NCBI GenBank assembly: GCA_964199315.1
Contig: OZ116699.1
Coordinates: 31,062,001-31,126,000, forward strand
DNA: 64,000 nt
Direction of reading: 5' to 3'
Source: Orbicella franksi
Lineage: Eukaryota
In this document: piece after piece, positions 35,201-38,200 of the stretch
Position numbering within the stretch: the first letter of the stretch is position 1
Layout: every line of letters begins with the position of its first letter
Notes under the pieces: model-generated
Told to the model about the DNA's origin: nothing
The model's database searches: none
What the model saw: the letters and a program-made list of their open reading frames with translations, nothing else
Program-made: the position numbers and the translations under genes

Positions 35201-38200
35201 CACACACACAATTCAAGGCCACCAACTCGCGACCTTGATTTCACTAATTTTCCAAAAATTTAAAATTTGCCGCCATTTTGGCTGACCCTTCGCATCAGTC
35301 TTCTCTCAGTTCTTCTCCCTGTCAAAAGAGCTGTGACGTCAGGAACACGTGGCTTCAGACTGCAATTTACCAGAAAGATGCGTTTCCAAGACAACAAGAA
35401 ACCAACACTCACTTTTTGCTTTCGTTTTGCAAACAAAACGAGCGCGCAAAGCAGAATTCTTTCTCTTTTTCACATGAACCATCTTAATTAGCGGCGTAGG
35501 TGTACCGCAAAAAAACAGAAACTTTAAAACACAGTGATAAGAAATGACGTTTCGTTCACATCTCAGTTTTCTTTTCCTTCGTCGGGTGATGTGCAGATTT
35601 AGGCGAAAAAGTAAAAAAAACGAAAACAAACAAACAATATGGGCACTTTCAGGAAGCGTAAAAGGTAACCTCTGGTTTTACATAAATAAAAACGTACAAG
35701 ATAGTTCGCTACGATCATAGCTCGCAAAAGTTTAGTCAAGAACATGTGAAGTTTCTGTTCTTACCTTCGAACTTCCTTTCCAGCAACGAGAAAAGTTGTT
35801 CAAGAATGACTCGCGGCTCGTATTCGGAAGCTGCGTATGAATATTCTCCCAAGACCTTCAAAGAGGATGGATTAATACGCAGTGTTAAATTCGTTTAAAT
35901 ACTTCTTAAAAATACTTTTCTAAATTCGGACGGTAGTAAATAAATAAGAAAGATGTAACGTTCATGACGTCACAAGTGTGGGACAAAGAGCCCTGCATAT
36001 TGGCAGAGTTCTGTTTTATTTTTTGGCATGTTTATGAGCCAGGGCGCGGTCGAGGTCCATAACCATAAGGTCCATTTTATCTTTACTTTCCTTACAAAAT
36101 AACCTAATAGTTCCCTTAGTTCAAGATTCAACTCACCCAGCAAATAACCCAAACCAGAATATCCGGTAAAACAGGTTTTTCAAGAAGGTCGATGTAGGAC
36201 AATACAGCAAATCGGCGGGTTTCATTATCAAGTTCCTCATCATCATTTCCTGTGGATTTAAGAAAGGCGAGACATCTGCTGGCGATTAAATATTACGTAA
36301 CGCAGTTTGCCCGCCAGTTTTACGCTCCCCTTGCGCTAACGCTTATCATGCACTATTAAAGGTTTTATTCAATAAACACCTGATCAACCTATTTTTTTTA
36401 ACTATTCAAAATATATATTTTTTCCTTCATTGGATGCAAATATTCCAGACGCAGCCGAAACGTTTTTCAGTAACAAGAAACCGCAAAGTTTCTGATTGCT
36501 ATTGGCTACGAAAAATATCCGAATTGTAGCAACCACAAAGCGTTTCCTATGCCAAAGGCCATGAAGAGTCTCTGCATGTTGCTATCCCCGGGGAGTTTCT
36601 AAATGCTTGTTGGCACCAAGAGTTTCTGAACGATACCGGCCCAAGCAGTTCGCGATTGATATTTGCTAATTGTATAGGACATCAGAGAGGTCCACAAACA
36701 AAGTCAGAGTTAAAACTCAAACCTGAACAGTCATTTCTGTGGTGAGCATATACTGAAATGAAAAGAACTTAGCATAGCGCACCTTCAGCTAAGAGCCGCA
36801 TCAAGTTGTGTGCCACACCCTCTCTGACGAGCGATCCACCAAGCTCAAACACCTCATTGATAGTCAGAATGTACCACGAGTTGTCTGGCGCATATTTGAC
36901 AGTCATGTCAAGGGTTCATTACTTATTAACGGAATAATTATTGAAATAATAAGGCGGGCTTAACACAGAGTGCGTTTGTTGAATATTCTGGCCCGGGTCG
37001 TTGTTGGTTCGTTCGTACGTCCACTCGTTCGTTCGTTCGTTCGTTCGCTCGCTCGTTCGCTCGTTCGCTCGTTCGCTCGTTCGCTCGTTCGCTCGTTCGC
37101 TCGTTCGCTCGTTCGCTCGTTCGCTCGTTCGCTCGTTCGCTCGTTCGCTCGTTCGCTCGTTCGCTCGTTCGTTCGCTTCTTCATTCGTTCGTACGTTCGT
37201 TCGGTCGGTCTTTCGTTCATTCGTTCGTTCGCTCGTTGGTTGGTTGGTTGGTTGGTTCATTGGTTGGTTGGTTGGTTGGTTGGTTCCTAACCTTGGAGAC
37301 CCAGTTGACACGAATATGTACAAACATATAAAATCTACACATATTTTTGTTTAAGTATGGAAGTTGACGAATTAAAGGATATCTTTCAGCAAGCTCGGTT
37401 ATCCTATCGACCAGTTCTGTTCTGAAATACGCATCTGTTGTGGATTTGAGATACGACAGCAGTTTATCACAAACTGTTTCCACATTCGCAGCATTTGTTA
37501 TATGGCATAACAGATCCAATGTCTGGGATCAATCAAGAGAAAACATGAGATACATAAAAACAACACCATATTAAATGATACTGAGTTAAGGAATTCTGTC
37601 CAAGCTTCACAACTTACTGATGATAACTACCTTCACATGTACAGTAGTATGTGACTAGTAAAGGCAACGTTAAAGAGATGACGTAAAGAAAAAGGAAGTG
37701 AAAAACAGAAGGAATTGCCACATAATTATGGAAATAATAGGTGCCCATTGAGTTCAAATTGCGTGCAGATGACGTTGATCAACTTCAAATCCATGCCACC
37801 CTTATGCAGTTACATACACTGTAGCTACAACTTCATGTACATAACTAGTATTGCTAAGTTGTACATACCTTTCTTTTCAGTGTCTCATCTGGATCATTGA
37901 GGCAGTCAATGACAATCCGCTGGTAGGCAGGTTCCATGACAAATCCACCGCCCATTTGGATCAGAGATGTTAATGAATTGATGCCTATGGAATACCGAGA
38001 GAGGAACTTTACTTTGTCAGTGTCCATAACAAACTCATGGAATTACTACATAAACATTACCCTAACAAAATGGGTGTAACAAATTGATGAATTTGACCAA
38101 CGATATCAAGCAGTGTTACGAGAACTGCACACGAAGATCAAAATGATCAAAATGATCTCAACCGTTCCTAACCAATACCAGACATTTCCTGAAAATGGTC

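Follow-up and report, generated by a model that had tools for sequence, protein, structure and literature searches.

A probable U12-dependent intron with AT-AA termini in the AP4E1 gene of the coral Orbicella franksi

The host gene and the borders of the intron

The window analysed here is a stretch of 64,000 nucleotides of the Orbicella franksi genome (GCA_964199315.1, contig OZ116699.1, forward-strand positions 31,062,001 to 31,126,000), and all positions given below are those of the window unless another contig is named. The gene under study lies on its minus strand and is, by its domain composition, the gene for AP-4 epsilon adaptin (AP4E1). Its exons match the Adaptin_N profile (PF01602) and a C-terminal open reading frame (30100–30402, minus strand) matches the AP4E appendage platform (AP4E_app_platf, PF14807) with 41.6 bits against a cut-off of 27; both the Adaptin_N trunk and the appendage platform were found, and the assignment to AP4E1 made in the initial annotation of this DNA stands. 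Two full-length homologues, P0030 and P0035, combine Adaptin_N with the AP4E platform and align exon by exon over 46.6–30.0 kb of the window.

Coding exon 11 (37383..37522, minus strand) reads TLDLL...ITELAE followed by AG, ends in phase 2 and corresponds to Adaptin_N positions 322–367; it was placed by tblastn with P0030 and P0035. Coding exon 12 (36783..36895, minus strand) was also placed by tblastn, with the GT-AG intron downstream of it taken from joint reads; it begins with a single A, then TAT GCG CCA..., so that the two exons together encode R-YAPDNSW, and continues to LLAEG. The numbering of exon 11 assumes a short exon 8 that is implied by residues 265–288 of the homologues; this exon was not located in the window by either the listing of open reading frames or tblastn.

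Between these two exons lies an intron of 487 nt (36896..37382, minus strand). The last bases of exon 11, GCTGAAAG, end at 37383 and are directly followed by ATATCCTTT (37382–37374, minus strand; intron +1 to +9), which matches the A-type U12 consensus for 5' splice sites in full and contains the RTATCCTT pattern that we used to recognise U12-type 5' sites. Near the other end, CCCTTGAC (36907..36914, minus strand) is the sole match to CCTTRAY within the intron. The initial annotation had put the A of this box 12 nt before the intron's 3' terminus and the sequence bears this out: the presumed branch A at 36908 is 12 nt from the intron end at 36896, and the box, read as TCCTTRAY, falls within the optimum of 11–13 nt between branch point and 3' splice site of U12 introns (PMC3584512). 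The last 30 nt of the intron are 47% pyrimidine and form no polypyrimidine tract. The 3'-terminal dinucleotide is AA (36896..36897, minus strand) in the letters of the window, in an independent DNA contig and in orthologous loci.

The window contains four copies of ATATCCTTT where 0.81 would be expected. Of these, only the one at 37382 directly follows an exon and is paired with a suitably spaced branch box. For the other three, at 11252 (plus strand), 20953 (minus strand) and 63323 (plus strand), neither feature is found in register, and they are probably chance occurrences. Most of the intron is filled by a tandem repeat of an 8-nt unit (36998..37286; 36 copies, 86% matches), a run of CCAA type. 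Orthologous introns measure 333 nt (L008), 360 nt (L012), 391 nt (L020) and 945 nt (L010), showing that intron length varies between taxa.

The same four letters, ATAT, stand at the start of the intron (37382–37379) and at the start of exon 12 (36895–36892). As the initial annotation had warned, aligners may slide the boundary over these shared letters: five placements of the cut yield an identical mRNA, the four alternatives to AT-AA being TA-AA, AT-AT, TC-TA and CC-AT. Among the five, the U12 5' consensus is matched at 9/9 positions in the AT-AA register alone, and it is the position of this consensus that points to AT-AA over the slid placements and thus to the presumed exact cut among the five equivalent ones.

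Reading frame is less informative. The join LAER-YAPDNSW had been put forward as the only one in frame, which is incorrect; acceptors are in frame at every third position and two of these end in AC, giving intron ends at 36902 and 36914. The first of them uses the AC at 36902..36903 (minus strand), and its join, ELAESVKYAPDN, is free of stops and adds two amino acids, with SVK replacing R. With these AC acceptors also in frame, frame by itself could not establish the AT-AA reading, which called for other evidence.

RNA and DNA reads at the locus

RNA runs with reads at this locus were X23 (polyA) and X24, and their reads were placed on 34600–37048; a third run, X21, yielded none. Four X23 reads, which begin at two or more different points, reach 36895 and then continue into exon 11; their loose ends give a 30-nt consensus (agreement 1) with a unique match in the window, starting at 37383. 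The joint in X23 is thus exactly the predicted 36895/37383, as anticipated when spliced reads were proposed as a check, and the intron is removed from the mRNA in these reads. The 5' side of this joint is known only from the loose read ends, reads having been placed on the part beside the tandem repeat (37049–37171). RNA support for the joint is thin: four junction reads, all from one run, X24 having too few for listing. RNA depth over 36896–37048 was zero in both X23 and X24, from which it follows that the AC acceptor at 36902 was not used in these data. The introns downstream in the same RNA data are ordinary GT-AG introns (36782–36250, 35764–34952 and 34823–34712).

The DNA contig from run X15 is 4610 nt long at a depth of 63, spans 34600–37048 and has five differences from the window, of which four are listed (35316, 35905, 35930 and 36297). 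None is listed at the intron's 3' end (36896–36914), and the AA is therefore not an assembly slip; a C-to-A error at 36896 had been singled out as something to exclude, and this independent contig agrees with the AA of the window.

Several further observations were made from these reads. Position 34875 is C>T in 9/9 X24 reads, and 36297 is G>A in 2/2 RNA reads and in the X15 contig; both are ordinary variants between individuals. The joint of exons 13 and 14 was covered by 12 reads and appears, in an unambiguous placement, as 35852|36134, where the coding strand gives AG..TC as intron ends; the mRNA reads TGG GTG TTG, where the canonical GT-AG join (GT at 36136, AG at 35857–35856) gives TGG GTC TTG. 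The X15 contig has the letter of the window at 35853. This odd joint is likely to reflect a synonymous base change at 35853 in the individuals behind the RNA; 34875 and 36297 are further positions at which those individuals depart from the window. At 35184–35211, within the intron that separates exons 14 and 15, there are many 31-letter X15 contigs at high depth, and the main X15 contig has a CA insertion behind 35194; this stretch is probably a dispersed or simple repeat.

Orthologous introns and the minor-spliceosome machinery

With exon 11 as the query, phmmer returned 134 proteins. All spliced orthologues among them read LAE(R/K)(Y/F)AP.N.W and have no two-residue insertion, while many short unspliced open reading frames contain LAE-RYP, the translation of AG|RTATCC. 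At the DNA level the window was compared with 13 further loci, and AG|ATATCC was present at the same codon position in 14/14 loci. The compared sequences include ENA and Logan contigs (ERZ1755868, ERZ25067889, ERR9606729, ERZ25073805, ERZ25072724 and ERZ23499561). In the 13 further loci the +7/+8 letters after ATATCC are TT in 12 and TC in L018, so that each has a U12-type intron at the orthologous position. Four of the loci (L009, L011, L014 and L015) are on contigs that stop before the 3' site and contribute the 5' site only; the contig of L008 just reaches exon 12. Loci with the 3' end on the contig have CCTTRAC with its A 11–12 nt from the intron end, the exception being L019, in which the box is degenerate.

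The 5' site, the branch box and its spacing are thus constant, and the final letter of the intron differs between loci. Four coral-like loci (the window, L008, L010 and L012) end in AA, two (L016 and L020) in AG, and L013 together with three more distant animals (L017, L018 and L019) in AC. The comparison with homologous introns that had been proposed at the outset returned ATATCC at the same codon throughout and the same AA in L008, L010 and L012. The 3' letters can also be read from unspliced read-through open reading frames, in which the codon before YAPDN consists of the last two intron bases and the one that opens exon 12. When the read-through frame of the window was used as a query, this residue was K, hence AA, in 10 clusters; a close relative, P0139, had T (AC), and P0143, the same locus as L020, had R (AG). 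Some of these clusters share taxa with the compared loci. The AA, in the register set by the U12 consensus, is common to the window, the three other loci and these 10 clusters, which argues for a genuine AT-AA subtype rather than a sequence error.

In a tree of 261 exonic bases the AA loci and L020 form one moderately supported group (80/86), with the AC loci outside it. On the simplest reading, an ancestral AT-AC intron would have acquired A for C as its final base in a group of corals and kept it there, with a later change to G or back to C in some relatives; given the weak support of the 261-nt tree, it is uncertain in which direction this base changed. A two-residue in-frame indel of exon 11 (window 37420–37440) divides the coral-like loci into two sets, with TTDADVYF in L010, L011, L012 and L020 and TTDAYF in the window, L008 and L009.

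The 497-Mb coral genome was searched with Rfam profiles for the snRNAs of the minor spliceosome, and all four were found above their cut-offs: U12 (100 bits, cut-off 53), U6atac (113 bits, cut-off 33), U11 (90 bits, cut-off 39) and U4atac (54 bits, cut-off 53). Within the U12 copy, GAGTAAGGAAAA is complementary to a CCTTGAC box with the A bulged, and the branch box CCCTTGAC of the intron is complementary to the GUAAGGA stretch of this same U12 gene. The U11 copy starts with AAAAGGGC, complementary to TCCTTT. There are two U6atac genes (L003, G000:C3:10958990-10959117; L004, G000:C3:10892305-10892432), and both have GAGCCGAGAGA in place of the Rfam consensus GAAAGGAGAGA, a stretch for which base-pairing to the 5' splice site has been described in human. 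No U6atac copy with the canonical GAAAGGAGAGA was found in the coral genome. In JGI metagenome contigs the GAGCCGAGAGA variant accounted for 52/80 hits to the flanking pattern and was the commonest form; the variant is widespread outside vertebrates and not peculiar to the coral.

A homologue of CCDC84/CENATAC (PF14968) is also encoded in this genome (L110, G000:C7:28472648-28474445), with three consecutive exon matches to the profile (positions 1–127, best 65 bits). In human, CENATAC/CCDC84 is specific for minor introns of the AT-AN class; it promotes their splicing in cells (PMC8280824), and a comparable role for the coral homologue at the AP4E1 intron may be envisaged.

Alternative readings and relation to known AT-AA introns

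Taken together, we consider this intron very probably orthologous to an old AP4E1 intron of the A-type, U12-dependent kind, which in the coral ends in AA. The U12 5' site, the branch box, the joint in polyA RNA and the snRNA genes all agree with the initial proposal of a minor-spliceosome intron with AT-AA termini, and we infer from the sequence motifs that the minor spliceosome is probably the machinery that cuts it. U11 and later U6atac would recognise ATATCCTTT at 37382, and U12 would pair with CCCTTGAC, bulging the A at 36908. The 3' cut would then be made 12 nt past the branch, set by the distance from the branch and not by the identity of the last base; if so, the AC 6 nt past the branch would be ignored, the 12-nt site would be used whatever its last base, and the intron would end in AA (36897–36896). 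The mRNA expected from these steps is ...GAAAG|ATATGCG (LAE-R-YAPDN).

The AA could instead reflect a mis-placed boundary, the minor intron being of the ordinary AT-AC kind with its acceptor at the AC of 36903–36902, so that the joined exons would encode ELAE-SVK-YAPDN. Such a join keeps the frame and creates no stop, AT-AC is the canonical terminal pair, and the predicted cDNA would have GAAAG followed by TGTCAAATATG. However, 36896–36901 is without any RNA read and the four junction reads break exactly at 36895; this AC lies only 6 nt past the branch A, against the optimum of 11–13 nt (PMC3584512); and the two extra residues are in none of the spliced orthologues. Further, L010 and L012 have no AC at that place and yet keep AA at 11–12 nt. 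The acceptors at 36902 and 36914 are thus ruled out by RNA reads, homology and branch distance, although not by frame, and we give an AT-AC boundary at 36902 hardly any probability. The chance is equally slight that the intron truly ends in AC and that its AA stems from faulty sequencing or assembly, or from a private allele. A single C-to-A change would suffice to create AA, and the close relative P0139 has T before YAPDN, that is AC; against this, the X15 contig (depth 63) has no difference listed at 36896–36914, and AA recurs in three other loci and 10 clusters of open reading frames at 76–98% identity.

The choice of spliceosome and of register has to be weighed separately, as the intron might be removed by the major (U2-type) spliceosome, or at a slid boundary such as AT-AT, despite its U12-like motifs. 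The five placements are indistinguishable from the mRNA. U2-type AT-AC introns, which likewise begin with AT, combine a U2-like 5' site with a pyrimidine tract. The coral intron has neither; its 5' site fits the U12 consensus at 9/9 only in the AT-AA register, its branch box is at a U12-typical distance, and the register is conserved over 14 loci. U2-type AT-AC introns do exist (PMC1557818), but we regard removal by the major spliceosome or at a slid boundary as highly improbable here, if marginally less so than the two AC readings above.

An AT-AA intron of the minor class has precedents. The initial annotation had called AT-AA a rare variant, which holds for absolute numbers, since three human, four mouse and one Arabidopsis introns of this type were documented (PMC1557818, Table 2), but not for its rank: in a survey of more than 3000 genomes AT-AA was the commonest non-canonical type of minor intron in animals and plants, with non-canonical termini in about 3.8% of conserved animal minor introns (PMC10639083). 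Such termini support U12 splicing (PMC3584512). Non-canonical U12 introns also often switch subtype between human and mouse orthologues, as for MSH3, which is AT-AA in human and AT-AC in mouse Msh3 (PMC1557818, Table 3). The AT-AA introns of human and mouse RASGRP4 and of human MSH3 resemble the coral intron in their U12 5' site, branch box and 3'-terminal A, and MSH3 also in the switch of subtype between related species at an orthologous intron. They differ in being from other genes and another phylum; in the coral case, unlike these, AA is common to several coral-like taxa and AC and AG are found in relatives, giving three different 3' letters.

Closer at hand are the AT-AC introns of AP4E1 itself (L013, L017, L018 and L019), which share the codon position, phase and ATATCC 5' site with the coral intron; most have CCTTRAC 11–12 nt from the end and all are without a pyrimidine tract, the difference being the last base, A in the coral window and C in these. 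A minor intron is reported in mouse Ap4e1 (PMC8848931), a likeness to the coral at the level of the gene. By its termini the coral intron also resembles the AT-AN class of minor introns that depend on CENATAC/CCDC84, whose A-type list includes AT-AA (PMC8280824), and would be a candidate for such dependence; its genome has the CCDC84 homologue described above. The coral AP4E1 intron therefore adds an example to an already documented type, together with a comparative series at one position.

Whether AA is kept for a reason is a separate matter. The weaker 3' end could in principle impose a slow, CENATAC-dependent step that sets the output of AP-4 epsilon, so that AA is retained non-neutrally throughout a group of corals; we think this unlikely. 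If true, AC, AA and AG at one orthologous intron would amount to a natural allelic series for the effect of the last base on minor splicing.

In practical terms, introns of this kind are often mis-mapped (PMC1557818), and annotation pipelines that require GT-AG or AT-AC termini, or that slide over the shared ATAT, would misplace the junction or add two residues to the protein. Existing knowledge of minor splicing is unchanged by the coral AP4E1 intron. It offers a natural illustration that the minor spliceosome may choose its 3' site by distance and not by the last letter: across related cnidarians that letter is C, A or G, with the 5' site, the branch box and the spacing of 11–12 nt held constant.
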